Positions 1-28,582 of a stretch of DNA of 64,000 bases are shown in pieces; position 1 is the first letter of the stretch; each line of letters starts with the position of its first letter. The DNA is from Macrostomum lignano. Taxonomy: Eukaryota. The position numbers were made by a program, and so were the translations under genes. The notes under the pieces were generated by a model that saw only the letters and a program-made list of their open reading frames with translations, was not told where the DNA came from and did not search any database. Location of the stretch: contig NIVC01000016.1 of assembly GCA_002269645.1 (NCBI GenBank), forward strand, positions 682,001-746,000, written 5' to 3'.

Positions 1-243
1 AACATTCGAACTCGAGTCAGCAGCCAGATGGACATCGGTATGTCGAAGTGCGCCACCGTGTGCGTTGTGACCTGCGTCACGGTGACCTTGACGGTGTTGT
101 TCGGTCTCCTCTGCCTGCCTGCGCTACTCTGCTGGGTGCACAGGTACTCCATCGTGGTGCACACCTGCCCGGAGTGCAAACTGGAACTGGGCCGCTACAA
201 TCCGAGGTCACCTGCAGAGGGCGAAGCTGCGATCAACGAGTGA
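1..243 (+). CDS. 3' part of a LITAF-domain (zinc-ribbon membrane) protein; 5' end lies upstream of the window
   Basis: Frame is open from base 1 (NIRTRVSSQMDIG...). A hydrophobic Cys-rich stretch is followed by HTCPECKLELGRY, the C-terminal HxCPxC knuckle of LITAF domains. Stop at 241-243; AATAAA at ~437. Confidence 0.8.
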   Translation, partial: NIRTRVSSQMDIGMSKCATVCVVTCVTVTLTVLFGLLCLPALLCWVHRYSIVVHTCPECKLELGRYNPRSPAEGEAAINE

Positions 244-1085: not shown

Positions 1086-1486
1086 GTGAAAGCATCGTAT
1101 TTCATTAGGCTCAATACTTGAGAAGTTGCTGTTCCAAAAATGCAACGTCTACTCTTTGTAGCTGGCGTTTAAAACAAGCAAGAATCAACAGCCAAAAAAA
1201 CATTGGTTTGTCGTCTGCTTCTAAATTTTTACCAACCTTTGGCAAAGCACTCACAGGAAGCAACCCAGCCACCCCTGCTTGCTAATAAACTTAGCAGATG
1301 CACAGCCTGTGCGCAGTGCAGGGCGGGCAGTCAATGCACACCGCCAGCTGCACCCCACTGCACACTCTACCCCAGCTGTACAATACGCACAGGCCGCAGC
1401 ACTAAGACGGAAGGCGCAGGCAGTTCATTTCAGCCTTCATCTCAGCAGTGAATTCTCAGCTAACTGCAAGCATCGCAGAGGCCGTC

Positions 1487-4400
1487 ATGCCGCTCCGCCA
1501 GCCGCTGAACCTGCGCACCAGACTGCACCAGGTGCGAGCTCGCTACCCATCCACCTGGGCCATCCTGGGCCGCAAGCTGCAGCAAGGCGAATCTTGGCGA
1601 GCTCTGGTTGAAGACTACCTGGACTCTGAGGGCCGGCCTCTGTCAGCCGACCAGGCCCTGCTGGTCTGCCAGAGTCCTGGCGGAGAAGCCGCGGCCGCCC
1701 TGCTGCTGTGGGAGCGCAGCTGCAGCCTTGAAGAGCTGCTGGAGGTCCTGAGCCGTCGAGGACTTCGCGAAGCCGAGGCCTTCGTGCGGTCCAACCTGCT
1801 GAACCAGGCCTGGCAGCCTCCGCCCACGACTGCGGAGCCGCCCCCTCCGTCCCTTCCGCCCCGCCCCCGCCCCGCCCGCGCCTCCGCCTCCGCCTCCACC
1901 AGACGACTCGCCGCTGGAGTTCCCGGCGGAGCAGCTGCGGCGCGCCGTGGCCTGCGGCTCCCTGATCGGCTCGGGCGGCTTCGCCGAGGTCTTCCGGACG
2001 GCAGCGCTGGTCGAAGGCCGGCAGCACGCGGTGAAGGCCTACCGACCGGGCATCAGCGAGGAGGCGCGCCAGGCCATCCGCAGGTCGATCGGCGCCCTCA
2101 GCGGCCTGCGGCACCCGAGCATCGCTCGGCTGGTCGGCTTCGGCTACTCGCCCGCCGACGACCGCATGTACTCCGTGTTCGACTTCCACAGCAACGGCGA
2201 CCTCCGCCAGCTGCTCGACCGGTTCGCCGAGCCCCACAGCTGGTGGTCGTCGGCGGAGGCGGTGGCCAGCGGGTTTCACCTGGGCGGCACGCGGCTCCGC
2301 ATGGCAACCGACATCGCCTCGGCCGTGGAGTTCCTGCACGCCACCGAGGAGAAGTCGATGGCGCGAGACGAGCGGGCCGGCCTCCTCAGCTTCAGCTTCG
2401 TGCACAAGGATGTGAAACCCAGCAACATCCTGGTTGACGGCGACTGGCGCTGCCGCCTCGCCGACCTGGACTTCCTCGACCTGACCACCGCAGGGCTCGG
2501 CCAGACCGTCTGGGGTGAGCAGCGGGCCCAGCAGGTGGCCAGAGTGCACACGCTGGGCTACCGGCCGCCCGAAGACCGAGTCACCTGCAAGTGGGACGTC
2601 TTCAGCACCGGGGTCACCATCTTGGAGCTGCTCACCGGCCTGCGCGGCCAGCCCGCCAGCAGCGACACTCCGGAGGAGTCCTGGCTCTGCTGGGCCCTGG
2701 CCGACGGTCGGGCTCCGCCGCCTCAGCCGGGGCTGCGGCTGTCCGCAGGCCTGCACGCCCGCGTCTGCAGAGAAGCCGTGGCGCCCTGCCTGCTGCACAA
2801 CTTCGCCGAGAGGTGCACCGCCGCGGTGCTGCGGGGCCGCCTGCAGACGCTGCTGGCCGCGGCCGAGGCCGAGGACGGTGAGGCCGGGCTGCAGGAGTTC
2901 AGCTTCGCCGAGCTGGATGCCGCGGTCCGCCAGGTCGGCGAGGAGCTCGGAGCCGGCAGCTTCGGCCGCGTGTACCGGGTGAACCTGGCAGGGCGGCCGG
3001 TCGCCGTCAAGAAGCTGCTGCCCGACTCTGCGGGCATCCCGCTGGAGGCGCTGCGGCGCCAGGCGGGCCTCCGCCATCCCCGGCTGCTGTGGCTGCTCGG
3101 CTTCGCTCACCGCGGCGAGGCGGCGGGCGGCGACCTCCTGCTGGTCTACGAGCTGTGCGAGGCCGGCAACCTGCGGCAGCTGATTGACGACTTCGCCGCC
3201 GGCCGGGCGCCGCCAGCCTGCGAGTTCCAGCTGGCCGGAGTTCGAATCCGGATGGCGCACGAGCTGGCCAGCGCCCTGGACTACCTGCACAGCCGGCAGG
3301 AGGTCGAAGCCGCAGCGGCTGGCGACTGGCGCAGCTTCAGCCTGGCGCACCAGGATGTGAAGAGCACCAACGTGCTGCTCACTGCTGACTGGCACTGCAA
3401 GCTGGGCGACCTGGACAGCCTGCAGGTGCGTCTGGGGAGATCGGGGACAGCCTGCAGGTGCGTCTGGGGAGATCGGGGACAGCCTGCAGGTGCGTCTGGG
3501 GAGATCGGGGACAGCCTGCAGGTGCGTCTGGGGAGATCGGGGACAGCCTGCAGGTGTGTCTGGGGAGATCGGGGACAGCCTGCAGGTGTGTCTGGGGAGA
3601 TCGGAGACAGCCTGCAGGTGTGTCTGAGGAGATCGGGGACAGCCTGCAGGTGTGTCTGGGGAGATCGGGGACCGTCTGGGGAGATCGGGGACAGCCTGCA
3701 GGTGTGTCTGGGGAGATCGGGGACAGCCTGCAGGTGTGTCTGGGGAGATCGGAGACAGCCTGCAGGTGTGTCTGGGGAGATCGGGGACCGTCTGGGGAGA
3801 TCGGGGACAGCCTGCAGGTGTGTCTGGGGAGATCGGGGACAGCCTGCAGGTGTGTCTGGGGAGATCGGAGACAGCCTGCAGGTGTGTCTGGGGAGATCGG
3901 AGACAGCCTGCAGGTGTGTCTGGGGAGATCGGGGACCGTCTGGGGAGATCGGGGACAGCCTGCAGGTGTGTCTGGGGAGATCGGGGACAGCCTGCAGGTG
4001 TGTCTGGGGAGATCGGAGACAGCCTGCAGGTGTGTCTGGGGAGATCGGGGACAGCCTGCAGGTGTGTCTGGGGAGATCGGGGACAGCCTGCAGGTGTGTC
4101 TGGGGAGATCGCGGCTGCTCAGGCAACTGAGTTGAGGCTGCTCCGTCCTTTGAGTAGGGGCTGCTCTCCGTTCTCAGTCTCAGACTCTCCCTCCCTTCCT
4201 CCTCCCGCGCCAAGGATCACTGTAGTTTAACGCCAAGGACCACTGTAGTTTAACGCCAAGGACCACTGTAGTTTAACGCCAAGGACCACTGTAGTTTAAC
4301 GCCAAGGACCACTGTAGTTTAACGCCAAGGACCACTGTAGTTTAACGCCAAGGACCACTGTAGTTTAACGCCAAGGACCACTGTAGTTTAACGCCAACAA

Positions 4401-4902
4401 GGAGGGATGAATGATTCCAAATTGTCTCTAAGCAGCCTCATCACAGTCTCCATTCCTGCCCCATCAGACGGCCACCGCAGGATCGGGCCTCACGCGGATG
4501 GAAGACAGGCCGCAGTCCTCGCAGCCCAGAATCCGCTACTTCACCAATGGCTACTTCGTGCCGGGAGAACCGGACAGGCCAGGCGCACCTGGCGAGCTCC
4601 TGTCCTGCAAGGTGGACGTGTACGCCCTTGGCGTCACCCTGCTGGAGCTGTTCACCGGCCGGCGCGCCTCTGGCGGCGGTGAGCCCGAGCTGCGACTGAG
4701 CCTGCTGAGCGACTCGTCAGTGCAGCAGCCGCCGTCGCCGCAGGCAGGGCTGCTTATCAGCGACAGGTGCTATCTAGACCTGTGCGACAGGGTGTTCAGA
4801 CCGTGCCTGGCCCTGAACTCGGCTCAGCGACCGACTTCCACCAGAGTGCTGCAAGAACTCGACAGATTTTACAGCAGCTGCGAACCGGATCTGGAAAATT
4901 GA
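1487..4902 (+). CDS. IRAK/Pelle-like protein: N-terminal death domain, Pro linker, two tandem kinase domains
   Basis: ATG 1487 opens a helical death-domain-like region (W...L...W...CSLEELLEVL). A frameshift in the C-rich poly-Pro run at ~1860-1880 leads into kinase 1 (EFPAEQL, GSGGFAEV, AVK, HKDVKPSNIL, DLD, GYRPPE, DVFSTGVTILELLTG) and then kinase 2 (EFSFAEL, GAGSFGRV, VAVKKL, HQDVKSTNVL, DLD). A phase-0 intron 3426-4467 (CAG|GTGCGT ... CCATCAG|ACG) joins to exon 4468-4902 (DVYALGVTLLELFTG ... CLALNSAQRPT). Confidence 0.85.
3413..4110. repeat. 32-bp minisatellite (GGACAGCCTGCAGGTGTGTCTGGGGAGATCGG) starting inside the exon and filling the 5' part of the intron
   Basis: Period 32 (TGCAGG at 3421 and 3453); about 20 units, some with internal deletions. 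Confidence 0.95.
4210..4393. repeat. 23-bp near-perfect tandem repeat x8 (CCAAGGACCACTGTAGTTTAACG)
   Basis: Eight consecutive units in the IRAK-like intron. Confidence 0.95.
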
Positions 4903-5834
4903 GTGCAAAGCTGGGATTGCGCGCTTTGCTCTGATTTTTTTTAATTTGTCCCGATTCGATCAACACTTCGACTAGCTTTTAGTCTTGAGCTTCAAGAGTG
5001 TACCACAGGAAGACAAAAAATTGTTAACTTCTCGTGCATGTAGCCTTAGAAGTCTCAACACATTTTAAGCTATGAGACTAGACTTTGTAGTTTTTATATT
5101 TAACCACTATATACGCGCGCGTAGTAGAAAATAAAGAATCGTGCAGGTCCACTCCAAATAAAATTGCTCGTGCAGTTATGTGGAGGTATGCTGCGTTTTA
5201 ATATTTTTTTCGTTGATTCTGCCTTATCCATTGCAAAGACACACTCGTAAAAATTGACAGTATTTCTACGTTTTACTTCCATGTATGATAAAAAACTTAG
5301 GACATCCTGCTTACTGTTGTTGGTAGAAATTACTGATTGTGGGTAAAAATGGTTCTATGCTATAAAGGAATTAAAACTATTGAATTGAAAGATTTCTTTG
5401 AAAGAGAAATTTTAAAAATCTTTTTAAAAGTTCTTCAAGCAGATTTCACCTTGGCTCATTTTTAAAAACTTTTGGTATTTTGAAGTGTAAGTGCCGTGTT
5501 TAATATTTAAACTCAGTCAAATAGTTTTAACAATTGATATGATCGATTATTACGCCACGTTGCATGTGCAGCGTAGCAACACGGACAAAAAGCAGTCTCC
5601 TGCCCGACTCCTGGAAGGCATTCACCTCAGCGTCAATATAAGCAACAATTCTTTGCGTTATTTAGTTAGTAATATGTTTGTATTTTTGGGCATGCATTTT
5701 TGCAACTTAACCTTGGCTTGGCCCCTTGCTAGCCAACTATAGATTGGTTAGCTTGGCTAGGTGTTGTGCATGTACACTAGGCCTACACTACACAGTACAC
5801 CTTTTTTGTCTACGCAGCTGCTTAACTAGATGTA

Positions 5835-8290: not shown

Positions 8291-9810
8291 ATGGACTACA
8301 ATATTGGTATTAATGGATGCAAACCAGCTTCTGCTCTCAATGGGCCACCATTCCAACAGTGCATTCTTGACTCAAAGGATGTTTCAAGGTAAGAAAAAAA
8401 TTGTATTTTTCTATGTTTACTTTTTATATCTTGATACTAACTATATTTTTAAAAATAATGTGTTAATCCTTATTACTAACAAGATAATAAGTAATAATTT
8501 TCATTATTTTTTAAACTTCTTTTAAATTTGTAATATTGATTCTGAATCTTTAGAAGTTAAAATTATAAGATATTTATCAATAGGCCTATTGATCCCATCT
8601 ATTATGGATGCTGATCCCTAAACCTAGAATACTGATAACTAATTCTAATAATCTCTAAGCCTTGGATACCAATACCCAAGTGTTAGATACTAGCCCCTAA
8701 TCCTATGATACTAATGCCTAACCCTAGCTTACAAATTTCTAATCCTAGAACACTGATCCCTAATCCTAGCATACAAATCCCTACTCCTAGGGCACTGATT
8801 GTTAATCCTAGGATATAAATCTCTAATCCTAGGACACTAATCCCTAATCCTAGCATACAAATCCCTAATCTTAGTTCATTAATCGCTAATCCTAGGACAC
8901 TAATCCCTAATGCTAGCATACGAATCTCTTATCCTCGGACACTAATCTCTAATCCTGGGACACTAATCCCTAATCCTACGACAGCAATCCCTAATCCTAG
9001 GACAATAATCCTTAATCCTTTAAGCTACTCCCTAATCTTAAATTACCGATCTCGAATGCCGCGACTGATCCCAAACCCCTCAATCGCAGAGCGGCCTGCC
9101 GATCCGACGGCACCGGTCGCCAGCGCCAGCCATCGGCGCCAAGCACCGCCGCGGAGGAGGCCGCCGACAGTGACTCCAGCGGCAGCCGAGTCCGGGTCCT
9201 GACGCCCAGCTGCCAGCTGTGCGAGCTGCACACTCTGCTGCGGGATCGCGACACCAGCCGGTCGGATTTCGTATTCTACGCTGACAGGCTGATTCGACTG
9301 CTGGTTGAGGAAGCGCTGAACTACCTGCCCTACCAGTCCCTGTCGGTGCTGACGCCAGGCGGGCATCCCTACGACGGCCTGCGCGCCTCCCGCGGCAGCT
9401 GCGGCATCAGCGTTATGCCGTCTGGCGAAGCGATGGAGAAAGGCCTGCGCGACTGTTGCCGGGCAATCCGCATCGGCAAGATGCTCATCCAGGGAGGCGA
9501 CTGCGCTGGCGGCGACTGCGCCGACGCACCGGAGCCGGTGTACGTCCGTCTGCCGCCTCGGGTGCACCAGCGTCGAGTCCTGCTGATGCAGCCAGTGCTT
9601 GGCGACGGCCGAGTTGCCACCAAAGCCCTGCAGCTGCTAACCGAGGATTATCAGGTGCCCGAGTCGAATCTGTTTCTGCTTAATCTGTTCTCAACTCGGC
9701 ACGGCTTAGACTCTGTGCTGTCGGAGTATCCGGACGTTCGGGTGCTCACTACCGAGGTGCACGATCTGGTGCCGTATCACTTCTGCGCCAGGTATTTCGG
9801 CATCGACTGA
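8291..9810 (+). CDS. UPRT: Uracil phosphoribosyltransferase homolog (metazoan UPRT type)
   Basis: Exons 8291-8388 (ATG...AG|GTAAGA) and 9090-9810 join in phase 2 (AGA). Motifs LRDRDTSRSDFVFYADRLIRLLVEEALN, GEAMEKGLRDCCRAIRIGKMLIQ and LTTEVH...RYFGID match the UPRT family, including the typical C-terminus. Confidence 0.9.
8680..9020. repeat. Degenerate CTAATCCCTAATCCTAG-type repeat in the UPRT intron
   Basis: Recurring CTAATC/CCTAG motifs with ~21-bp spacing. Confidence 0.8.
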
Positions 9811-10854: not shown

Positions 10855-11560
10855 AATTCTCTCTAGATCCTCATGCCCCAATTCTCATTATCTTCAGATC
10901 CCATCTCCAGATCCCCATTCCAAGACCCCCATTCCCCCTAGATCCCATTCCCCATATCCTCATTCCCTTCAGATCCCCATTCCAAGACCCCCATTCCTTC
11001 TAGATCCCATTCCCCAGATCCTCATTCCCTTTAGATCCCCATTCCAAGACCCCCATTCCTTCTAGATCCCATTCCCCAGATCCTCATTCCCTTCAGATCC
11101 CCATTCCAAGACCCCCATTCCTTCTAGATCCCATTCCCCAGATCCTCATTCCCTTTAGATCCCCATTCCAAGACCCCCATTCCCCATAGATCCCATTCCC
11201 CAGATCCTCATTCCCTTCAGATCCCCATTCCAAGACCCCCATTCCCCATAGATCCCATTCCCCAGATCCTCATTCCCTTCAGATCCCCATTCCAAGACCC
11301 CTATTCCCCATAGATCCCATTCCCCAGATCCTCATTCCCTTCAGATCCCCATTCCAAGACCCCCATTCCCCATAGATCCCCATTCCCTCTAGATCCCCAA
11401 TCCTTCCAGATCCCCATTCCAAGACCCCATTTCCCCCTCGATCCCCATTCCCCAGATCCTCATTCCCTTTAGACCCTCATTCCCTTTAGATCACCATCTT
11501 CAGATTCCAATTTCCAGATCCCCAATCCCTCCAGATCCCCATACCCTCCAGATCCCCATC
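10855..11560. repeat. 62-bp higher-order repeat made of four ~14-17-bp AGATCCCCATTCC-like subunits
   Basis: Period 62 (ATCCCC at 11221 and 11283); C-rich on the plus strand. Confidence 0.9.
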
Positions 11561-12502: not shown

Positions 12503-13522
12503 GCATCCCCGGCCGCAGTCCGCCTTGGCCGCGACTTCTACGCCCGCGACTGCGTGGAGCTGGCTAAGCGGCTGCTGGGCCAGCGCCTGGTCTGCGAGGC
12601 CTCGGACCCCAGCGGCTGCCGCTCAGCCGGCCGCATAGTGGAAACTGAGGCCTACCTGGGCGAGGCTGACCCGGCCGCGCACTCTTACAGAGGCCCAACT
12701 GAGCGCAACGCCGCTATGTTCATGCAGCCGGGCACCTGCTACGTGTACAGCATCTACGGCCAGTACTGCTGCATCAACGTATCATCCAATGGCGACGGTT
12801 GCGCAGTACTAATCCGCGCCTTGGAACCGTGCGAAGGCGAGTCGGCTATGCAGTCGCGACGCGGCAAATTCGGTAAAACTACTAATAGTAGCAATAATAC
12901 CGTTGGCGCAAAATTGTTGAAACCGCACGAGCTGTGCAACGGTCCGTCCAAGCTGTGCCAAGCACTAGCAATTGATAAGCTGACTCATAATAAAACTGAC
13001 ATGTGCGATCCGGCTGCCCGGGTGTACATTGAGTCGGCGCCCGGCCCGCCAACCAATCAGATTGTCACTTCGCGGCGGATCGGTATTGACGGCTGCGGGC
13101 CGGCCGCCGCCGCCATGCCGCTGCGATTCTATTGGCTCGGCTGTTCCTGCGTTAGCCGGCGAGATAAGGACGCGGAGGCTTTGACGGCGCCAGCCGAGGC
13201 GGCAACATCAAAGGCGTCAACTAATGCCAACTTGCCAACTTCAAAGCAGATATCGCAAGCAACTTCAAAGGCACCGCCGCCAAATTCAAAGGCACCGCCG
13301 CCAACTTTAAAGGCACCGCCGCCAACTTCAAAGGCACCGCCGCCAACTTCAAAGGCACCGCCGCCAACTTCAAAGGCACCGCCGCCGCCAACTTCAAAGG
13401 CACCGCCGCCAACTTCAAAGGCACCGCCGCCGCCAACTTCAAAGACGTCGGCTAGGCCTAAATCACAAATCCGGAATGCCGATTCCGATTCGTCGCCACC
13501 CAAACGAAAGCGGCTTCGCTAG
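12503..13522 (+). CDS. MPG: 3-methyladenine (alkyladenine) DNA glycosylase with repetitive C-terminal tail; initiator ATG not in this exon
   Basis: After the acceptor CCCGCAG| the frame reads ASPAAVRLGRDFYARDCVELAKRLLGQRLV, GRIVETEAYLG, YVYSIYGQYCCINVSS, VLIRALEP, LCNGPSKLCQAL and RIGI, all hallmarks of AAG/MPG. Stop at 13520-13522. Confidence 0.92.
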   Translation, partial: ASPAAVRLGRDFYARDCVELAKRLLGQRLVCEASDPSGCRSAGRIVETEAYLGEADPAAHSYRGPTERNAAMFMQPGTCYVYSIYGQYCCINVSSNGDGCAVLIRALEPCEGESAMQSRRGKFGKTTNSSNNTVGAKLLKPHELCNGPSKLCQALAIDKLTHNKTDMCDPAARVYIESAPGPPTNQIVTSRRIGIDGCGPAAAAMPLRFYWLGCSCVSRRDKDAEALTAPAEAATSKASTNANLPTSKQISQATSKAPPPNSKAPPPTLKAPPPTSKAPPPTSKAPPPTSKAPPPPTSKAPPPTSKAPPPPTSKTSARPKSQIRNADSDSSPPKRKRLR

Positions 13523-14493: not shown

Positions 14494-15839
14494 ATGAACG
14501 GTGAATTTGGCGCCAGGCATCGGCGCGAGCCAGTCGGCGCCAGCTGGGGTCGCTCTGGCGCCTGGCAGGAAACTTACTACGGCTCCCCGGCGCCGTCACC
14601 GCCTGCCGCGTCTGGTTTTAGCGCCACGGCGCCGGCGTCAAACGCGTCGATGGCGCCTTCGTTGCCGAGCGGCGGCGCCGGCGGTTGTCGCGATCGGACG
14701 CCGGAATTTCGCGCCGTCGTCTCCCAGATGTGCGGCCTTGGCGGCGGTGCCGCCGGTTGGCGCCGAAGAGCTGGCGCCACACCAGGCGCCGTTGGCGAGT
14801 CCCGTTTCGCAATGCACGCGCGCCAAATTGGCGCCAATTTGAATCGGACAGGCGCCAAAATGCAGAAACTGGCGCTGCTGGCCGGGCGTACCGCCACCGG
14901 GCATCAACAGCTGCCGGTTTCTGTCGGAGAGTTCGACGAGCTCGCCAGGATTGTCGGTCAGGTGAGAGTGCAACTTCTGACTGGCGATATGTATCGTAAA
15001 TAACTTTGTTTAGCGTAAAAGCTGCGTTAAATTTTTAAACAAAGCTGATGAAATTTGGTAAAATTTAATAGTTTAAATATTGGAATTCCATCCCAATGTC
15101 TATCCTAATTATTCCCATTCTTATCCTCTATCTGAGGTTAAGCAGAGTCGGTTGTGGTTAGTATGCAACTTCAATATCCGAGAAGCTTAAAAGCGGGTAT
15201 ATTGCTACTCTACTGTTAGTAATATCAGCTTGATCGGAAAAACCGGCACTTGCACAGGATCTGAACGGCCTGAACCAGTCGATCGGATTGCTGCAAGACT
15301 CCATCAGGCACAGCGGCGCATCTCCGCACGGCCAGTCGGCAGCCCACAGTAGCGCTGTAGTGCTGGCGCTGCAGACCCGTCTGGCCGACATGTCCGGCCG
15401 GTATCAGGACACTGTCCAGCTGAAGCAGCAGCAGCAGAAGCAACACCAGGCCGCCTATCAATCTGATTCGATGCACCGCAGTCAATCTGACGCTTCGGTC
15501 ATTGACATGTCGGGCATCGTGGAGCAGCACCAGCGGCAGGGCCAGGTGCTCGCCAATGCGCGGGAGCAGGACGAGCGGGACGATGCAATGCGAAGCATCG
15601 AACAGACCATGGTGGACCTCGGCTCCGTGTTCCAGCAGCTCGCCACCATTGTGAAGGAGCAGGACGAGCTGGTGCACCGTATCGGAGCCAGCGTTGACGA
15701 CACCGCCCTCAACGTCGATGTGGCTCACGCGGAATTGTTAAAATTTTTCAAATCTTTAACCTCAAATAGGAGCTTAATGCTGAAGGTGTTCGGCCTGCTT
15801 GTCATTTTCTTTGTCTTGTTTGTTGTGTTTCTGCGATGA
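14494..15839 (+). CDS. STX5: Syntaxin-5 (Qa-SNARE, ER-Golgi)
   Basis: Exons 14494-14961 and 15258-15839 (phase 0; CAG|GTGAGA ... GCACAG|GAT). Contains the RDRTPEF Sly1-binding motif, the SNARE motif MRSIEQTMVDLGSVFQQLATIVKEQDE and a C-terminal TM segment (NRSLMLKVFGLLVIFFVLFVVFLR). Confidence 0.9.
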
Positions 15840-17255: not shown

Positions 17256-17876
17256 TGGGTGAGAATTTCCTGCTAGGAGATGAGATCATATTTTATGTGT
17301 GAGATATACTGCAGAGAATCTAATTTACCCGAGTCTAATTGCTGTACCTCTCGGATCTCGTGTTATCAAAGCTAAGACAAAACAGCACCAGCAGTTTAAT
17401 ATTATAAGTCTTTCGCTCATAAATATAATGTGTTTTTGTTGAGTTTAAATCGTTGATTTAATTGCTAAGTTAAAAAAAAACTCGTAGATTTTTTCTCTTA
17501 TGATGCAAATGGTTTCTGAATGACTGAGTGAGTTTTGAAATTCATTATTTATTTAAACTAGCCTATTAATAACCTATTAACCTTTGTCTTGACTATCAGT
17601 GGTGGCGGTTAAACATGTTAGGCAGATGTAATTCAATTATATAAATCATTAACTGTGTACTCTATGCTAGGCATAGCATGTGTACGCAATATTGGCCTAT
17701 TTGGCTTTTATTGGAGGACCAAATTTCAATCATATATCTATTGCTGTGTCACCTGCTCGTAGCTCTGTAATACAAGTGATGTTCACTGATATTGTCACTG
17801 GAGTGCCTTCTTTGTTGCTTTATAAGTTATTTCAGTAGGTGAATGTCTTAATGAGTTATCTATTTGGTATTGCTGT

Positions 17877-20800
17877 TCAGGACTTCAGGCTGGATCCCTC
17901 ACCGATTCGTCAGGACTTTAGGCTCAATCCCTCACCGATTCTTCATGACTTCAGACTCAATCTCCCGCCATTTCTCAGGACTTCAGACTCAATCCCTCAC
18001 CGATTCTTCAGGACTTCAGACTCAATCCCTCACCGTTTCTTCAGGACTTCAGACTCAATCCCTCACCGTTTCTTCAGGACTTCAGACTCAATCCCTCACC
18101 GATTCTTCAGGACTTCAGACTCAATCCCTCACCGATTCTTCAGGACTTCAGACTCAATCCCTCACCGTTTCTTCAGGACTTCAGACTCAATCCCTCACCG
18201 ATTCTTCAGGACTTCAGACTCAATCCCTCACCGATTCTTCAGGACTTCAGACTCAATCCCTCACCGATTCTTCAGGACTTCAGACTCAATCCCTCACCGT
18301 TTCTTCAGGATTTCGGACTCAATCCCTCACCGTTTCTTCAGGACTTCAGACTCAATCTCCCGCCATTTCTCAGGACTTCAGGCTCAATCCCTCACCGATT
18401 CTTCAGGACTTCAGACTCAATCCCTCACCGATTCTTCAGGACTTCAGACTCAATCTCCCGCCATTTCTCAGGACTTCAGACTCAATCCCTCACCGTTTCT
18501 TCAGGACTTCAGACTCAATCTCCCGCCATTTCTCAGGACTTCAGGCTCAATCCCTCACCGATTCTTCAGGACTTCAGACTCAATCCCTCACCGATTCTTC
18601 AGGACTTCAGACTCAATCCCTCACCGATTCTTCAGGACTTCAGACTCAATCCCTCACCGTTTCTTCAGGATTTCGGACTCAATCCCTCACCGTTTCTTCA
18701 GGACTTCAGACTCAATCTCCCGCCATTTCTCAGGACTTCAGGCTCAATCCCTCACCGATTCTTCAGGACTTCAGACTCAATCCCTCACCGTTTCTTCAGG
18801 ACTTCAGACTCAATCCCTCACTGTTTCTTCAGGACTTCAGACTCAATCCCTCACCGATTCTTCATGACTTCAGACTCAATCCCTTACCGATTCTTCAGGA
18901 CTTCAGACTCAATCCCTCACCGTTTCTTCAGGACTTCAGACTCAATCCCTCACTGTTTCTTCAGGACTTCAGACTCAATCCCTCACCGTTTCTTCAGGAC
19001 TTCAGACTCAATCCCTCACCGATTCTTCATGACTTCAGACTCAATCCCTCACCGATTCTTCAGGACTTCAGACTCAATCCCTCACCGTTTCTTCAGGACT
19101 TCAGACTCAATCTCCCGCCATTTCTCAGGACTTCAGACTCAATCCCTCACCGATTCTTCAGGACTTCAGGCTCAATCCCTCACCGATTCTTCAGGACTTC
19201 AGACTCAATCCCTCACCGATTCTTCAGGACTTCAGACTCAATCCCTCACCGATTCTTCAGGACTTCAGACTCAATCCCTCACCGATTCTTCATGACTTCA
19301 GACTCAATCCCTCACCGATTCTTCAGGACTTCAGACTCAATCCCTCACCGATTCTTCAGGACTTCAGACTCAATCCCTCACCGTTTCTTCAGGATTTCGG
19401 ACTCAATCCCTCACCGTTTCTTCAGGACTTCAGACTCAATCTCCCGCCATTTCTCAGGACTTCAGACTCAATCCCTCACCGATTCTTCAGGACTTCAGAC
19501 TCAATCCCTCACCGATTCTTCAGGTCTTCAGACTCAATCTCCCGCCGATTCTTCAGGACTTCAGACTCAATCCCTCACCGATTCTTCAGGACTTCAGACT
19601 CAATCCCTCACCGATTCTTCAGTACTTCAGGCTCAATCTCCCGCCATTTCTCAGGACTTCAGACTCAATCCCTCACCGATTCTTCAGGACTTCAGACTCA
19701 ATCCCTCACCGATTCTTCAGGACTTCAGGCTCAATCCCTCACCGATTCTTCAGGACTTCAGACTCAATCCCTCACCGATTCTTCAGGACTTCAGACTCAA
19801 TCCCTCACCGTTTCTTCAGGACTTCAGACTCAATCCCTCACCGATTCTTCAGGACTTCAGACTCAATCCCTCACCGATTCTTCAGGACTTCAGACTCAAT
19901 CCCTCACCGATTCTTCAGGACTTCAGACTCAATCCCTCACCGTTTCTTCAGGATTTCGGACTCAATCCCTCACCGTTTCTTCAGGACTTCAGACTCAATC
20001 TCCCGCCATTTCTCAGGACTTCAGGCTCAATCCCTCACCGATTCTTCAGGACTTCAGACTCAATCCCTCACCGATTCTTCAGGACTTCAGACTCAATCTC
20101 CCGCCATTTCTCAGGACTTCAGACTCAATCCCTCACCGTTTCTTCAGGACTTCAGACTCAATCTCCCGCCATTTCTCAGGACTTCAGGCTCAATCCCTCA
20201 CCGATTCTTCAGGACTTCAGACTCAATCCCTCACCGTTTCTTCAGGACTTCAGACTCAATCCCTCACTGTTTCTTCAGGACTTCAGACTCAATCCCTCAC
20301 CGTTTCTTCAGGACTTCAGACTCAATCCCTCACCGATTCTTCATGACTTCAGACTCAATCCCTCACCGATTCTTCAGGACTTCAGACTCAATCCCTCACC
20401 GTTTCTTCAGGACTTCAGACTCAATCTCCCGCCATTTCTCAGGACTTCAGACTCAATCCCTCACCGTTTCTTCAGGACTTCAGACTCAATCCCTCACCGT
20501 TTCTTCAGGACTTCAGGCTCAATCCCTCACCGATTCTTCAGGACTTCAGGCTCAATCCCTCACCGATTCTTCAGGACTTCAGACTCAATCCCTCACCGAT
20601 TCTTCAGGACTTCAGGCTCAATCCCTCACCGATTCTTCAGGACTTCAGACTCAATCCCTCACCGATTCTTCATGACTTCAGACTCAATCCCTCACCGATT
20701 CTTCAGGACTTCAGACTCAATCCCTCACCGATTCTTCAGGACTTCAGACTCAATCCCTCACCGTTTCTTCAGGATTTCGGACTCAATCCCTCACCGTTTC

Positions 20801-21650
20801 TTCAGGACTTCAGACTCAATCTCCCGCCATTTCTCAGGACTTCAGACTCAATCCCTCACCGATTCTTCAGGACTTCAGACTCAATCCCTCACCGATTCTT
20901 CAGGACTTCAGACTCAATCTCCCGCCGATTCTTCAGGACTTCAGACTCAATCCCTCACCGATTCTTCAGGACTTCAGACTCAATCCCTCACCGATTCTTC
21001 AGTACTTCAGGCTCAATCTCCCGCCATTTCTCAGGACTTCAGACTCAATCCCTCACCGATTCTTCAGGACTTCAGACTCAATCCCTCACCGATTCTTCAG
21101 GACTTCAGGCTCAATCCCTCACCGATTCTTCAGGACTTCAGACTCAATCCCTCACCGATTCTTCAGGACTTCAGACTCAATCCCTCACCGTTTCTTCAGG
21201 ACTTCAGACTCAATCCCTCACCGATTCTTCAGGACTTCAGACTCAATCCCTCACCGATTCTTCAGGACTTCAGACTCAATCCCTCACCGATTCTTCAGGA
21301 CTTCAGACTCAATCCCTCACCGTTTCTTCAGGATTTCGGACTCAATCCCTCACCGTTTCTTCAGGACTTCAGACTCAATCTCCCGCCATTTCTCAGGACT
21401 TCAGGCTCAATCCCTCACCGATTCTTCAGGACTTCAGACTCAATCCCTCACCGATTCTTCAGGACTTCAGACTCAATCCCTCACCGATTCTTCAGGACTT
21501 CAGACTCAATCCCTCACCGTTTCTTCAGGACTTCAGGCTCAATCCCTCACCGTTTCTTCAGGACTTCAGACTCGATGCCCCGCCGATTCTTCAGGACTTC
21601 AGACTAAATCTCCCGCCACTTCTCAGGATGTTAGGCTCAATTCCCCAAAG
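17877..21650. repeat. ~3.8-kb array of a 33-bp unit (CAGGACTTCAGACTCAATCCCTCACCGATTCTT) with a 32-bp variant
   Basis: Over 110 units ending ~75 bp before the METTL1 acceptor; explains the spurious 1247-aa ORF. Confidence 0.97.
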
Positions 21651-21744
21651 CTCTTCTAGGCTTCGATCCTAAATGCTACTCCGTACTTCAAACTCGATAT
21701 TCGTCCGCTCCATTTCTGACTGCAGACTCGAGCCCTCACCTTCA

Positions 21745-22779
21745 ATGGCCTCAATAAGTGAGGAGCAGCAGCTGCCGCAGAAGCGCTACTTCCGGCAGCG
21801 GGCGCACTGCAACCCGCACTCCCGGCATAGTCTGGACTCGCCAAGCCGGCCGGCTGACGTCGACTGGCCGGGCATCTTTGCCAGCGATTTCAAAGAAGGC
21901 GACGATGTGGAATTCGCCGATGTCGGCTGCGGCTACGGCGGCATGCTGTTCGCCCTGGCCGAGCTGCACCCGGACAGGCGGGCGCTCGGCATGGAGATTC
22001 GGATTAAAGTGTGCGACTATGTGCAAGAGAAGATTCGAGCTATGCGAGCCGCTCATCCTGGTTGCTATGGCAACATTGCCTGCGTCAGGAGCAACGCTAT
22101 GAAACAGTTGGTTAATTATTTTCGAAAGGTGCGCGTTCGCAGAGTTTGATAATTCTACACTCAAACAGTAGTAACTTCTGCCAATTCCTGAGACGCCATT
22201 TTGTTGGATGTGACGCATTGAGCTGAATCACAACTTGATGCATCGATTTCAGGAAATGACACCTTGATTCCAGGAAATGACTTCTTGGTTGCAGGAAATG
22301 ACACTTTGATTCCAGGAAATGATACCTTGATTCCAGGAAATGACACCTTGATTCCAGGAAATGATACCTTGATTCCAGGAAATGACACCTTGATTCCAGG
22401 AAATGATACCTTGATTCCAGGAAATGACACCTTGATTCCAGGAAATGATACCTTGATTCCAGGAAATGACACCTTGATTCCAGGAAATGACACCTTGATT
22501 CCAGGAAATGACACCTTGATTCCAGGAAATGACACCTTGATTTCAGGAAATAATGTCTCGATTCCAAGCAATGACCAAACTTGATTCCAGAGAATACCAC
22601 CTTGATTACAGCAAATAATATCTTTCTTCTTAAGTGAAACAATTTTTGGAAAGAACATCCTAATTCTAAGAAATTCACATCTTAGTTCTAGGAAATGATG
22701 CATTGATTTTCTGAAATGAAACTCGATAATTTAAGCAAAATCCGATTAGAAAATCAGAGGGCCGTTTTACACCCTGTGC

Positions 22780-23829: not shown

Positions 23830-26800
23830 TGTGAGCCATTGATTTGCTATAGAGCGCCCACCCCATTTTTCCGGGTCCGTACGTCAGCCGGCTTTCTCTC
23901 TCTAACTCTCGCCCCCTTATCTGTACTCGTAGTAAGCAAAGTGTACATTTACGACCACCACCCCACGCAATGCAGTAGCCGACTAAATATTAAATAAATA
24001 ACATCGTCTCGCCCACTGTGGCTTTCGTACTTCTTCGTGCAACTGCCAAATCATGCATCAAACTCTTACATGGCGTCGCAAGCCATAGCACTATCGCCAC
24101 CTGGCACCTTCGATGCAGAAGGTGAGCCGCATACCATCGCACAAAAGTGGAAAAATTGGACTCGGCGCTTTGAGAGCTACCTTGTCGCGGCCGGCATCAA
24201 AGATGAAAATCAAGCTCAAGAAATCCTACTCTACTCAGCCGGCGAATTCATCCACTCGCTCGTCGAAGACAACAGCATTGCACGAGGCGAATCAGCCAAG
24301 AAACTAGCAGAAAACATTCAAAGCCACCTGGACAAGAAAAACAACATCGTCTTCCTACGATACATGTTTGAGACCTGCCGACAGCTAGAGGGCGAAGGAA
24401 TCGATGCCTGGTATGTCCGACTGAAGAAACTGGCGGAGCCATGCAAGTTCGGCGACTTGAGCAACTCGCTAATTCGGGACAAGATTGTGGCGTACTGCCG
24501 GTCTGAGAAAATGCGGCGCAATCTGCTCCAGTCAGGCGACATCAGCCTGGCTGACACGCTGACCAAGATCCGCGCCAGAGAAACAGCGGAGCGACAGGCG
24601 CAAGCAATGGAGCTCGGCAGCCGACCGGTGCCGGAGGACGTGGCAGCAGTGAGCAGCAGCGGCCGCGGCTCGAGAGCGGCAGACGGAAAGTCGCAGGTCA
24701 CCTGCAACCGGTGCGGCAGACAAGGGCATGCTGAATGCGACACCGCCCGGGGCAAGTCCTGCAGGAAATGCGGCAAAATCGGACATTTCGCCCGTGCGTG
24801 CAGGTCCAGTAAGGCCGGCCAGCTCAACGCCATCCCGAGCGAGCAGGAGAACGTGACCTACCTGCTGGACAAAGACTCAGCTCCAGTCCAGGAGGGAATC
24901 TTCCACGTGGCCAGTGATCCGGCGTCAGCGAGAGTGACCGCTCAAATCGGCGGCACCTCCATGGACATCCTTATCGACAGCGGGGCCGGTTGCAACATCA
25001 TGGACGTCAGCAGTTTCAATGGCCTGCCACACCGACCCCCACTGCAGCCAGCCAGCAGCCAGCTGTTTGCCTACGGAAGCTCGCACCCACTGAAGCTGGT
25101 CGGCAAGGTGACTCTGCCTGTAAATGTTTTTGGTGTCTCCAGAGACGCGCCCTTTTTTATATTCGACGGCAGGGGCGCGACGGTCCTTGGCAGAAAATCT
25201 GCAATCGAAATGGACATCCTCCGTATCGGCCCGCCCAGCAGTCAGCCGACACCCGAGGTTCTCGCCGTCCACCGATCAGAGGGCCTCATCGACCAACTGC
25301 TCAAAGGAAATCGACTAGCGGACGAAGGCCTCCCAGAGCAACTGCAGCTGAGCCACATCCTCACCAAGCACGCTCAGGTTTTCAGCGGCATCGGATGCGT
25401 CAAGAACTACACGGCAACGATCCACCTGACGGAGGACGCCAGGCCGGTCTGCCACGCGCCCTCAAGGGTTCCTGTTCACCTGGCCGCAGCGGTCGACAAG
25501 GAGCTCAAGCTGCTCGAGGACCTAGACATCATCGAGCCTGTCAACGGCCCGGCACCCTGGGTGGCTCGGATGGTCGTGGTGCCAAAGGCGCAGACCGGCG
25601 AAGTTCGAATCACCCAGGACCTCCGAGATGTCAACAGGTTTGTCATCAGGGAGCGACATCAAATCCCAACTTTCGAGGAGGTGACTGGGTGCATGGCAGG
25701 CGCCAAAGTCTTCTCGGAGCTGGATGTTGCCAAGGCTTTCTACCAGATCCTTGTGGCGGAAAGCTGCAGGAACCTGCTGACCTTCTCGACACCACGGGGG
25801 CTGCGACGGCTCAAGCGGTTGTGCATGGGCCTCTCCACGGCTCAGGAAATCCTCCAAGTCGTCATGTCAGGCATCCTGGCTGGACTCGACAAGGTCAAGT
25901 GGATTCATGACGACATCGTTGTTTTCGGGAACTCCTTGGAGGAGCACAACAGGAATCTGGCAGCATGCCTCGCCCGCCTCCAGCAGCACGGCGTCACGCT
26001 CAATCCCGAAAAGTGCAAGCTAGCCAGAGACAAGATCACATTCATGGGCATGCAGCTCTCAGCCAGTGGAGTGCAGCCCACCGAAGACAAGATCGAGACA
26101 GTCAAGGCATTCAAGGCTCCAGAGACCACCAGCCAGGTGAGGTCATTTCTAGGCCTTGTCAACTACCTGGCTGTGTTCACACCGCAGCTGTCAAAAATCG
26201 CTGAGCCACTGCGGCGCCTGACGAAGAAAGGCGCGGTCTGGAGATGGAGCGAAGCTGAAGACGCCGCTTTCAAGCAGCTGAAACAGCAGATCACGGAAGC
26301 CGGCGCCCTTAGCTTCTTCGACCAGAGACTGCGAACCGAGCTCATAGTCGACGCCGGTCCGAGGGGACTCGGAGCCATCTTGGCGCAGCGGCGAGAAGAT
26401 GGCACTTCAAGACCAGTGGCCTATGCCAGCCGGTCGCTCTCCGATGTAGAGTCCAGATACTCACAGACCGAAAAGGAGGCGCTGGCAGTGAAATTCGGAT
26501 GTCTCCGATTCCAATACTACCTGCACGGCGCACCTCGATTCGATGTGATCACGGACCACAGGCCGTTGGTCAACATGCTGGCGCCAGGGTCGAGGCCGCC
26601 TCCTAGAGTCGAGCGAATGGCTCTGCAGATTCAGCACATGAACTTCAAGGTGGTGTATCGCACAGGGCCCCAGAATGCGGCAGACATCCTCAGCCGACAA
26701 CCGCTAGCGACATCCGGGCACAACAAAGATGCACAGCAGAACTCCGCCAGCATCGGCGCGGTACTGCAGGCCGCGGTGCCGAGAGCGCTCACAGTAGAGG

Positions 26801-28582
26801 ACATCAGGCGGCACTCGCAGACTGACCCGCTGATCAAAGCCGCAATCGCCGCCATCCAGGGAGCCAGGTGGGACCTCGGCCACCCGGAGCTGAGGTCACT
26901 GTATGCACTACGAGACGAGCTTGCTGAGGAGGACGGAGTGCTGCTTCGGCGGGACAGGATTGTGGTGCCAAGCAGCCTCCGGGAGACAATGTTGCGCCTC
27001 GCACATGCCGGACACCTGGGACTGCGGAAGACACTGGCCAGGCTGAGCAGCAAAGTCTGGTGGCCAAAGATGAGCGCAGATGCGGACAAGGCCGTCAGCA
27101 GTTGCCGCAGCTGCATCATGACATCACATAAGCCGACAGTCAGCGCGACGCCACTGCAGTCGTCCAGCATCCCCAAGGGCGCCTGGCTGTCGATTGGCGC
27201 CGACTTCCTCGGTCCGGTGCAGAACAAGATGCTGCTCGTCTGCGTGGATCACTACTCCCGGTATCCCGAGGTGCAGGTCATGCAGTCTACTACAGCGGAG
27301 GCAGTCATCCCGAAGCTGCGGGAATCATTCTGCAGGTTCGGCATCCCAGAGGAGCTCGTTACGGACAATGGGCCTCCATTCTCGTCGGCGCAGTTCAAGG
27401 ATTTCCTCAGGAGCTTCGGAATTCGACACCGGGCCATCACTCCGCTCTACCCTGCGGCCAACGGCATGACCGAGCGCCTGAACAGATCGATCAACAAGGT
27501 CGTCCGCGCTGCAATCGCGGAGAGCAGGGACTGGCGCGAGGCTCTGGACGAGTGGATTCTGGCGTACCGGACGGCGCCACACGCCACAACCGGACGCGCA
27601 CCCGCGGAGCTGCTGATGGGCCGCGCTTTGGGCAACGGCGTCCCCGGCCGGCGGCCACCAGCGCGGGTGCGCATCAACGACAAGGAGCTGCGGGAGCACG
27701 ACCGCAAGCAGAAGCTGACGATGAAGCGGCACGCCGACGCTGCTCGAAGACCAAGAGAGCACAACTACGCGGTCGGCGACCAGGTGCTGCGGAAACGCGT
27801 CAACCCGCTGAAGGGCCAAACCCCATTTGAGAGCGAGCCCTGGACTGTGACCAAAGTGCAAGGCAACTCGCTGCAGCTACGGCGCGGTCAGGCCACTTGT
27901 CGGCGACACTGCACGGCCCTGAAGGCGCTGCCACCGGAGCCCGACCTGGTGGAGCCGCAGGCGGCGGCACCCGACGCTGCCGGCCCCGCCGACGTCGAGC
28001 AGAACGTGCCGATCGCCCGCACCCCGCATCCGAGAGCGGCGAAGGAGGGATTCAAAGTCTACACTTGATTGAGGGGGGGGGGTGATTTGATAGTCTTGAA
28101 ATCCGTCGCAACTGTTTAAAAATGTTTGAAACTGTTAAATGTCTTTTGTAACCTTTTGCGTTTTTTTCGTTTCTCGAAATGCTTTTATTCCGGCTGCGTC
28201 CGTTGTTTTTTTTTATTCAATGGTCAGCGGAAACCAATATTTTATTTCCCCTGCAATCGGTATGTCGTTCGAGTCTCCCCGCGCTTCGAATGCAAGCATC
28301 GAGTTTTCAAAAGTGATTTTCTTTTCTGCGTTGAGGAGAGATGTGAGCCATTGATTTGCTATAGAGCGCCCACCCCATTTTTCCGGGTCCGTACGTCAGC
28401 CGGCTTTCTCTCTCTAACTCTCGCCCCCTTATCTGTACTCGTAGTAAGCAAAGTGTACATTTACGACCACCACCCCACGCAATGCAGTAGCCGACTAAAT
28501 ATTAAATAAATAACATCGTCTCGCCCACTGTGGCTTTCGTACTTCTTCGTGCAACTGCCAAATCATGCATTAAACTCTTACA
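23830..28582 (+). mobile_element. Full-length Ty3/Gypsy LTR retrotransposon, very recent insertion
   Basis: 241-bp LTRs at 23830-24070 and 28342-28582 (TG...CA) differ by one visible substitution. 5-bp TSD CTGGA on both sides, TGGCG PBS-like site at 24071, and purine tract before the 3' LTR. Confidence 0.97.
24070..28068 (+). CDS. Gag-Pol polyprotein in a single uninterrupted ORF (Gag, protease, RT, RNase H, integrase)
   Basis: Two Cys/His knuckles (CNRCGRQGHAEC, CRKCGKIGHFARAC), protease LIDSGA, RT WIHDDIVVF, RNase H (VDAGPRGLGAIL, TDHRPL), and integrase HHCC plus D-D-E (ADFLGP, TDNGPPF, TERLN). Domain order is Gypsy. Confidence 0.95.
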   Translation: MASQAIALSPPGTFDAEGEPHTIAQKWKNWTRRFESYLVAAGIKDENQAQEILLYSAGEFIHSLVEDNSIARGESAKKLAENIQSHLDKKNNIVFLRYMFETCRQLEGEGIDAWYVRLKKLAEPCKFGDLSNSLIRDKIVAYCRSEKMRRNLLQSGDISLADTLTKIRARETAERQAQAMELGSRPVPEDVAAVSSSGRGSRAADGKSQVTCNRCGRQGHAECDTARGKSCRKCGKIGHFARACRSSKAGQLNAIPSEQENVTYLLDKDSAPVQEGIFHVASDPASARVTAQIGGTSMDILIDSGAGCNIMDVSSFNGLPHRPPLQPASSQLFAYGSSHPLKLVGKVTLPVNVFGVSRDAPFFIFDGRGATVLGRKSAIEMDILRIGPPSSQPTPEVLAVHRSEGLIDQLLKGNRLADEGLPEQLQLSHILTKHAQVFSGIGCVKNYTATIHLTEDARPVCHAPSRVPVHLAAAVDKELKLLEDLDIIEPVNGPAPWVARMVVVPKAQTGEVRITQDLRDVNRFVIRERHQIPTFEEVTGCMAGAKVFSELDVAKAFYQILVAESCRNLLTFSTPRGLRRLKRLCMGLSTAQEILQVVMSGILAGLDKVKWIHDDIVVFGNSLEEHNRNLAACLARLQQHGVTLNPEKCKLARDKITFMGMQLSASGVQPTEDKIETVKAFKAPETTSQVRSFLGLVNYLAVFTPQLSKIAEPLRRLTKKGAVWRWSEAEDAAFKQLKQQITEAGALSFFDQRLRTELIVDAGPRGLGAILAQRREDGTSRPVAYASRSLSDVESRYSQTEKEALAVKFGCLRFQYYLHGAPRFDVITDHRPLVNMLAPGSRPPPRVERMALQIQHMNFKVVYRTGPQNAADILSRQPLATSGHNKDAQQNSASIGAVLQAAVPRALTVEDIRRHSQTDPLIKAAIAAIQGARWDLGHPELRSLYALRDELAEEDGVLLRRDRIVVPSSLRETMLRLAHAGHLGLRKTLARLSSKVWWPKMSADADKAVSSCRSCIMTSHKPTVSATPLQSSSIPKGAWLSIGADFLGPVQNKMLLVCVDHYSRYPEVQVMQSTTAEAVIPKLRESFCRFGIPEELVTDNGPPFSSAQFKDFLRSFGIRHRAITPLYPAANGMTERLNRSINKVVRAAIAESRDWREALDEWILAYRTAPHATTGRAPAELLMGRALGNGVPGRRPPARVRINDKELREHDRKQKLTMKRHADAARRPREHNYAVGDQVLRKRVNPLKGQTPFESEPWTVTKVQGNSLQLRRGQATCRRHCTALKALPPEPDLVEPQAAAPDAAGPADVEQNVPIARTPHPRAAKEGFKVYT

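Follow-up and report, generated by a model that had tools for sequence, protein, structure and literature searches.

A putative tandem kinase gene of the RLK/Pelle/IRAK family with internally duplicated kinase domains in the flatworm Macrostomum lignano

The stretch of DNA analysed here (the window) comprises 64,000 nucleotides of the flatworm Macrostomum lignano (assembly GCA_002269645.1, contig NIVC01000016.1, positions 682,001 to 746,000), and it carries at 1487-4902 a gene with two kinase domains, K1 and K2, in tandem. With moderate confidence, this gene is best explained as encoding a transcribed, soluble tandem-kinase protein of the RLK/Pelle/IRAK family (tyrosine kinase-like, TKL, group), in which K1 and K2 would have arisen by internal duplication and would follow a helical N-terminus and a linker. 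As part of the same explanation, the gene would be transcribed and specific to Macrostomum and would exist in at least three copies that are ~98% identical, the window locus being one of them. An original prediction, made from the letters of the sequence, had described a death domain followed by two complete IRAK/Pelle-type kinase folds and had proposed a one-polypeptide version of the IRAK4-IRAK1/2 (Tube-Pelle) pair, possibly an animal tandem-kinase immune protein. Its reading of the kinase domains was borne out, namely the IRAK-like extension motifs, the DLD in place of DFG, the missing alphaC glutamate of K1, the degenerate APE of K2, and the VAIK lysine and catalytic-loop aspartate and asparagine kept in both; the death domain was not confirmed, and the proposed pairing gave way to a different origin of the two domains.

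Both kinase domains are complete. K1 and the spliced K2 match Pfam Pkinase at E 4e-20 and E 9e-17, respectively, both over the gathering scores. Frame 0 is open from ~1803 to the splice donor at 3425/3426 and runs through K1 and into K2 without a stop or intron between the two domains, and the remainder of K2 is spliced on from a second exon. Each domain is preceded by an extension motif, LEFPAEQL (1914-1937) in K1 and QEFSFAEL (2892-2915) in K2, and both motifs align with high posterior in HMMER to the EFSYEEL extension of CERK1. The glycine-rich loops (G-loops) read GSGGFA (1968-1985) in K1 and GAGSFG (2949-2966) in K2, the lysine of the VAIK motif is present in both (HAVK, 2034-2036; VAVK, 3009-3011), and the catalytic loops HKDVKPSN (2403-2426) and HQDVKSTN (3348-3371) retain the aspartate and asparagine.

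Around these kept residues, the catalytic core is unusual in several respects. DLD replaces DFG in both K1 (2463-2471) and K2 (3408-3416), and none of 197 related kinase domains has it. The column of the alphaC glutamate, which is occupied by glutamate in 163 of the 197 relatives, holds serine in K1, with no glutamate within two helical turns, and K2 has a candidate glutamate (PLEALRR) whose register is shifted by one residue. The gatekeeper is phenylalanine in K1 and tyrosine in K2 (LVYEL), the latter being the residue of 155/197 relatives and a criterion for the RLK/Pelle/IRAK family (PMC3498205). Both domains are of the non-RD type, with lysine (K1) or glutamine (K2) before the catalytic aspartate, a position taken by arginine in 141 of the 197. 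The APE motif is PPE in K1 and degenerate in K2 (GYFVPGE...APGE, with an insertion), and an insert of ~10 residues separates helix E from the catalytic loop in both. Judged by its residues, neither K1 nor K2 is a pseudokinase under the three-residue rule, since the lysine, the aspartate/asparagine and the metal-binding aspartate are kept, with the caveat that K1 lacks the alphaC glutamate and both domains have aspartate for the glycine of DFG. Non-RD kinases have been reported to be independent of activation-loop phosphorylation (PMC3498205), and this independence fits the remodelled activation segments seen here.

The closest relative of each domain is the other. Aligned along their whole length, K1 and K2 share 35% identity (E 1e-47), and among 199 related domains they are reciprocal best matches at 144 bits, while the next best matches reach 75-82 bits. 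They also have derived characters in common, which are the DLD triplet, the non-RD loop and the insert before the catalytic loop. Because they are mutual closest relatives and share these derived oddities, K1 and K2 appear to descend from internal duplication of one domain that was already atypical; on the sequence evidence, the tandem arose by such a duplication and not by fusion of two IRAK types.

As for family placement, the top ~15 matches of K1 and K2 in a search of PDB sequences were all plant receptor-like kinases (RLKs) or receptor-like cytoplasmic kinases (RLCKs) at 45-61 bits. CERK1 was the best match (61 and 58 bits), followed by FLS2, SYMRK, LYK3, BRI1, PBL2 and FERONIA, and IRAK4 reached 39-41 bits, level with BRAF and PknB (BRAF, PknB and DDR1 lie at about 38-42 bits). 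The named nearest relatives were plant RLK/RLCKs (NCRK, PBL26, lectin RLKs) and a Capsaspora TKL/IRAK kinase, with no animal IRAK among them. When the full-length sequence was searched against 1.84 billion representative proteins, multi-kinase plant proteins ranked first because scores add over domains. Such a ranking says nothing on whether animal IRAKs with a single domain are closer, which was judged from the PDB scores. These matches place K1 and K2 by sequence in the RLK/Pelle/IRAK family (TKL group) in the broad sense, and their being recognisable orthologues of IRAK1-4, Pelle or Tube is not supported. Two RLK/Pelle-type domains in a non-receptor protein is the architecture of the tandem kinase protein class, an assignment that does not imply common descent with the plant tandem kinase proteins (TKPs).

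The two domains may divide the work between them. By analogy with the logic of Janus kinases (JAKs) and plant TKPs, K1 and K2 could form a divergent catalytic/regulatory pair. K2, which has a tyrosine gatekeeper, a probable alphaC glutamate and a canonical G-loop, would be the main catalyst, and K1, having lost the alphaC glutamate, might be a weak or regulatory module. The ~105-residue helical domain, together with the proline-rich linker, would mediate recruitment or oligomerisation.

The span 1487-4902 had been taken for one gene, and K1 and K2 are indeed joined within it; however, it is not one open reading frame (ORF), being interrupted by an intron of 1042 nt in K2 and by a frame break near the N-terminus. 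The intron has the donor CAG/GTGCGT at 3425/3426 and the acceptor CCCCATCAG/A (CATCAG/A) at 4467/4468, from which exon 2 continues in frame 1. The resulting junction GDLDSLQ/TATAGSGLTRMEDRPQ (GDLDSLQ/TATAGSG) is identical to that of annotated M. lignano proteins, including PAA94098.1. At the 5' end, a stop in frame with the ATG at 1487 lies upstream at 1403-1405, and the TTTCAG at ~1427-1432 is an acceptor-like site that could, from its sequence, be a cis-splice or a spliced-leader trans-splice acceptor.

The spliced and frame-joined model is 99% identical over 71% of its length to GenBank PAA94098.1 (BOX15_Mlig022961g1), which is titled hypothetical protein, and the region is a copy of BOX15_Mlig022961. 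The cluster mates of PAA94098.1 are PAA52016.1 (g2) and three UniProt entries named 'Protein kinase domain-containing protein'. All public models of BOX15_Mlig022961 are fragments of 202-617 aa, and the N-terminal ORF is in none of them; the gene is thus already in the databases, yet solely as truncated 'hypothetical' models. Annotated M. lignano models derive from RNA-seq-guided StringTie/TACO transcripts with coding sequences called by TransDecoder (PMC5730564). Because the GenBank models are RNA-seq-guided, the gene appears to be transcribed, with K1 (in part) and K2 on one mRNA. The predicted joining of both kinases in one mRNA thus holds to the extent that these models span part of K1 and K2, but they omit the N-terminal ORF. 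No description of BOX15_Mlig022961 and no expression data for Mlig022961 were found in the published literature, and among the 1.84 billion representative proteins the sole match better than E 1e-34 was the M. lignano protein itself.

Two further genomic copies, L001 (NIVC01000016.1) and L002 (NIVC01003316.1), are 98.3-98.5% identical to window positions 1245-4928. Homology between the window and these two loci is restricted to that interval, which takes in the gene plus 242 nt on its 5' side and 26 nt on its 3' side, and synteny between L001 and L002 extends over all of their 17-18 kb. Since only the gene body is common to L001 and L002, the window copy appears to be a gene-sized, intron-containing duplicate in another genomic context. 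The coding substitutions among the three copies fall at 7 synonymous and 3 nonsynonymous sites, and the coding sequence of the window copy is intact over ~2.3 kb apart from the linker.

The gene is about 70% GC (1300-4900), and its flanks are 30-47% GC. Long ORFs occur in every frame of both strands over 1300-4900. Because of the 70% GC sequence, the long ORF 1947-4130, which crosses the intron, is regarded as an artefact, and antisense or alternative-frame ORFs (e.g. a 636-aa ORF at 1485-3395 on the minus strand) were set aside as by-products of the same composition, having no Pfam match. The intron holds a minisatellite (3413-4111) whose 32-nt unit opens with the final 13 nt of exon 1, so that the 5' splice site CTGCAG/GTG(C/T)GTCTG occurs 20 times within it, against a chance expectation of 0. 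This minisatellite is open in each of the three forward frames, and if a downstream donor in it were used, the mRNA would be longer by 32-nt steps. Its copy number varies among the gene copies, with an intron of about 575 nt in L001 against 1042 nt in the window. A second intron repeat, of 23-nt units, lies at 4208-4397.

Several points weigh against a single tandem-kinase protein with a helical N-terminus. In 3/3 genome copies the N-terminal ORF and K1 are read in different frames (2 and 0, respectively, in the window), the frame of the linker was read from genomic copies, and the GenBank model PAA94098.1 starts at Met228 (MYSVFDF) within K1. In addition, protein database searches found no orthologue of the whole protein outside M. 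lignano, and a k-mer/HMMER search of a 5.8-billion-protein collection returned zero homologues of the N-terminal domain. Both AlphaFold models are of low confidence, and the catalytic and regulatory roles are assigned from residue inspection only.

The frame break might be real, in which case a truncated protein would begin at Met228, without the G-loop, lysine and alphaC of K1, and continue into an intact K2, and the upstream helical ORF would be a separate small product, an upstream ORF (uORF) or untranslated. This is unlikely, though it survives best among the alternatives. The break in every copy and the start of PAA94098.1 are what it would predict, and with a kinase-dead K1 remnant ahead of K2 the product would remain plausible as a pseudokinase-kinase protein. 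However, the K1 N-lobe upstream of Met228 has intact subdomains I-IV, including the G-loop and VAIK, contains no stops and is strongly codon-biased, the GC content at third codon positions (GC3) of its exon being 0.92; the upstream ORF likewise has coding periodicity and solely synonymous changes. Moreover, the offset of K1 relative to the ATG frame is not constant, being +1 in the window and +2 in L001 and L002. The indels, together with 6 substitutions among the copies, are all confined to the homopolymer-rich 54-nt (CCGCCC)n tract at 1849-1902, whereas the flanking coding sequence differs by ~0.5%, a pattern typical of consensus errors or slippage. The start at Met228 is itself a choice of TransDecoder, which picks the longest ORF of a genome-derived transcript (PMC5730564).

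Between the stop at ~1800 and Met228 there is no in-frame ATG, so that a start for the K1 N-lobe has to come from the upstream ORF. The assembly, Mlig_3_7, was built from PacBio continuous long reads (CLR) with Canu and polished with short reads by Pilon, and the genome is rich in ~98% duplicates. Given the type of assembly and an intact K1 N-lobe that lacks its own start codon, the break most likely stems from indel errors (or real slippage variants) in the poly-C microsatellite. A single polypeptide of ~790 aa is then the probable product of the real mRNA. Caution is due with the public M. lignano models for the gene, as all are truncated at the poly-C linker.

An intron that would repair the frame was also sought by enumerating GT/GC..AG pairs over 1700-1990, and none was credible. 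The only GT donors, at 1745 and 1784, would remove the last helices and LEFPAEQL and have poor acceptors, and the GT..AG interval 1849-1902, which contains all variable sites, is 54 nt long, a multiple of 3 that leaves the frame unrepaired. An exact-match query of public assemblies with the out-of-frame product of 316 aa gave no record, an outcome that is uninformative.

Preceding the linker, the N-terminal ORF looks coding by its codon periodicity and synonymous changes. The GC contents at codon positions one, two and three are 0.76/0.52/0.77 in the N-terminal ORF, 0.74/0.50/0.92 in the kinase exon and 0.63/0.52/0.78 in exon 2, and the coding phase indicated by them flips between ~1849 and ~1919. 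Only 2 substitutions occur in this ORF among the three copies, both third-position and synonymous. AlphaFold predicts for its ~105-aa domain an all-helical fold of six to seven helices over residues 9-105 (predicted local distance difference test, pLDDT, 57.7). The full-length model, built from a shallow 13-sequence alignment, has a mean pLDDT of 50.9, with the N-terminal domain below 60, and was used for secondary structure only; its K1 C-lobe falls below 30, K2 being the only kinase domain that the alignment covered.

The death domain that had been predicted for this N-terminus was not detected by any of the searches made. Pfam gave no family, including Death, at E<=10, and phmmer against PDB gave no sequence at E<=10. 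Foldseek with the low-confidence model of the domain returned a best E of 2.2, with the Pelle death domain at rank 7 (E 4.7, TM 0.3). Alignment by hhalign to nine IRAK4 death domains was collinear over 59 columns at 25% identity (E 0.16), and this weak likeness includes ESWRAL beside EGWKKL and LLLWERSCSLEELLEVL beside LLFDWGTTNCTVGDLVDLL. A profile hidden Markov model (HMM) of IRAK4 death domains scored the N-terminal ORF at -0.2 bits, a score equalled or exceeded by 137 of 2000 shuffles (p~0.07). In the controls, the human IRAK4 death domain itself scored 22.1 bits on Pfam Death, under the 22.6 cut-off, and the IRAK4 death-domain profile found the Pelle death domain at E 0.13, that of Tube at 1.1 and that of MyD88 not at all. 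Since genuine IRAK, Pelle and MyD88 death domains were barely detected, these sequence tests are insensitive. The N-terminal ORF is accordingly described as a predicted helical domain that may be a very divergent death fold, its 'death-domain-like' character being an eye-level resemblance. There is a slim chance that the mRNA is in frame and that the domain is such a fold, which would make the protein a death-domain/tandem IRAK-family kinase module in MyD88-type or other death-fold signalling; if so, the tandem-kinase immune proteins of plants would have a first counterpart in animals, independently evolved in macrostomid flatworms.

Slimmer still is the chance that the three loci are pseudogenes of a multi-copy family that is decaying in a genome duplicated recently. 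Frame breaks in every copy and the failure to find orthologues in other organisms would agree with decay, as would the state of L002, which has an extra 1-nt deletion and is annotated merely as a 202-aa C-terminal fragment. That deletion lies within kinase 1 (window-equivalent 2541) and reflects either an error of the assembly or a genuine mutation that inactivates the copy. The window copy, however, shows no further disruption in its ~2.3 kb of coding sequence and has intact splice sites, and the preponderance of synonymous changes (7 versus 3) and the RNA-seq origin of the gene models also speak against decay.

The proposal that a death-domain protein fused an IRAK4/Tube-like kinase to an IRAK1/Pelle-like one, as a self-contained Myddosome kinase module of flatworm immunity, is improbable in turn, and more so than decay. 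It draws on the layout of a helical N-terminus, a proline-rich linker and an FSFxEL-type kinase extension, which is that of IRAKs, on the weak collinear likeness of the N-terminus to the IRAK4 death domain and on the insensitivity of the death-domain tests, and planarians have been reported to have MyD88, TRAF and IRAK homologues (PMC6043800). The kinase domains argue otherwise. K1 and K2 are paralogues with common derived motifs, which points to duplication, and neither is of the RD type to which IRAK4 and Tube-like kinases belong (PMC3498205). IRAK4 is not among their best matches (39-41 bits versus 58-61 for CERK1), and the death-domain signal is lacking (hhalign E 0.16; HMM -0.2 bits). TRAF6-binding motifs are C-terminal in the IRAK1/2/M branch (PMC3498205), and a regular-expression search of the 790-aa model found no TRAF6-binding motif P-x-E-x-x-(aromatic/acidic). 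The genomic neighbourhood, where the adjacent LITAF-like exon is not conserved among the copies and no immune gene cluster is seen, does not favour the fusion either. Finally, a foreign origin of the gene, by contamination or by a receptor-like kinase recently acquired from a plant or alga through horizontal transfer, is highly improbable: the best named matches are all plant RLK/RLCKs and the 70% GC of the gene stands out from its 30-47% GC surroundings, but identity to plant kinases is only ~30-35%, the copies are embedded in large M. lignano contigs (922 kb, 104 kb) and in the window among animal housekeeping genes, the intron repeats are of the same kind as those of the surrounding flatworm DNA, and the size of the plant RLK/Pelle family dominates any search with an IRAK-family kinase.

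The features of the gene and of the window around it are collected in Table 1. The adjacent LITAF gene had been cited as immune context for the tandem kinase. Its exon, 1.2 kb upstream of the kinase gene on the same strand, covers the C-terminal half of a zinc ribbon of LITAF type, with an HTCPEC knuckle and a hydrophobic stretch, and a 23-nt satellite (514-1089) lies between the two. This LITAF-like neighbour is absent within 7 kb upstream of both L001 and L002, so the adjacency does not carry over to the other copies. The window neighbours are housekeeping genes and transposon ORFs, with no obvious immune gene or immune cluster among them. Thus, of the predicted animal tandem-kinase immune protein, the tandem kinases of RLK/Pelle/IRAK type in an animal stand, and the immune role receives no support from the neighbours. 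Elsewhere in the window, an uninterrupted 1343-aa ORF at 24037-28068 (+) resembles the gag-pol of a long terminal repeat (LTR) retrotransposon, with zinc knuckle, protease, reverse transcriptase, RNase H and integrase motifs recognised by eye, and it may be a young, intact element. Tandem-repeat arrays at 17839-21607 (+) and 10908-11483 produce spurious ORFs of up to 1247 aa; the M. lignano genome is reported to consist of 15% tandem repeats, with which the long arrays of the window are consistent (PMC5730564).

Table 1. Position, strand and supporting evidence of the kinase gene parts and the neighbouring features in the window.
Feature	Position	Strand	Evidence
Upstream region common to L001/L002 (promoter/5' untranslated region)	1245-1486	+	Homology to L001/L002 begins at 1245
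N-terminal ORF, frame 2, ATG 1487, ~120 aa	1487-1848	+	ORF reading, codon periodicity
Proline-rich poly-C linker, (CCGCCC)n; reading frame shifts from 2 to 0	1849-1913	+	Copy comparison
Kinase domain 1 (K1) with RLK/IRAK-type N-terminal extension	1914-2880	+	Pfam Pkinase E 4e-20, PDB alignments
Kinase domain 2 (K2), first part, QEFSFAEL to DLD, end of exon 1	2892-3425	+	Pfam Pkinase (spliced)
Intron within K2 activation segment, 1042 nt	3426-4467	+	Splice sites, annotated protein junction
Exon 2, remainder of K2 including C-lobe DVYALG, RPTS; stop codon 4900-4902	4468-4902	+	
LITAF-like exon, last exon of upstream gene	28-243	+	PF10601 E 1e-4, just under Pfam cut-off
UPRTase fragment	9346-9810	+	
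Methylpurine-DNA glycosylase (MPG) ORF, C-terminal SKAPPPT-repeat tail	12554-13522	+	PF02245 E 1e-56
SNARE-domain protein	15288-15839	+	
tRNA (m7G) methyltransferase-like exon	21673-22149	+	
RING-finger protein, Pro/Ser-rich tail	43164-44147	-	
DUF4218 (transposase-associated) ORF	58672-59937	+	

RLK/Pelle/IRAK-family tandem kinases are an emerging class of plant immune proteins, and a literature search brought up no animal protein of the IRAK family that has two kinase domains. The catalytic core of the flatworm protein, with DLD for DFG and lysine or glutamine at the RD position, is unusual and worth study. The significance is limited in that the gene is seemingly confined to Macrostomum and that its immune and death-domain readings are unproven.

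Compared with the animal IRAK family (IRAK1-4, Pelle, Tube/Tube-like kinase and PIK-1), the flatworm protein stands at the same TKL/IRAK level, has its parts in the same order and carries an FSFxEL-type extension. The tyrosine gatekeeper of K2 is also shared, and the non-RD loop resembles that of IRAK1 and Pelle (PMC3498205). It differs from this family in having two kinase domains instead of one, DLD for DFG and an undetected death domain; in the HRD motif, the arginine is replaced by lysine or glutamine, in contrast to the glycine or serine of IRAK1/2/Pelle. In addition, it is without the C-terminal TRAF6-binding motifs, IRAK4 is a mid-ranking match, and no orthologue was found beyond Macrostomum.

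Two kinase folds in one animal polypeptide, one of which likely regulates the other, are also known from the Janus kinases (JH2-JH1), RSK/MSK and GCN2, though these belong to other kinase groups (TK, AGC/CAMK) and have other accessory domains, and the sequence relationship is limited to the kinase fold. Within the same family, Capsaspora owczarzaki KJE90737.1, a 'TKL/IRAK protein kinase', is a holozoan multi-kinase protein and one of the top full-length matches (E 6e-31); unlike the flatworm protein, to which it has ~32% identity, it carries N-terminal leucine-rich repeats and three RD-type kinase domains, and it may be a fused gene model.

The plant TKPs, such as barley RPG1, wheat WTK1/Yr15 and Pm24, are likewise soluble proteins with two RLK/Pelle-family kinases in tandem, and the flatworm kinase domains score best against plant RLK/Pelle kinases, the family of these proteins. 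Unlike the plant TKPs, the flatworm protein has an independent animal origin and an additional N-terminal domain, and whereas plant TKPs usually have one clear pseudokinase, both flatworm domains keep the lysine, the aspartate/asparagine and the metal-binding aspartate. Among plant TKPs, 52/92 have been reported to derive from duplication of one domain, one copy then diverging (PMC6170490). If the full-length flatworm protein is real, such a duplicate-and-diverge kinase pair would have arisen convergently in an animal lineage.

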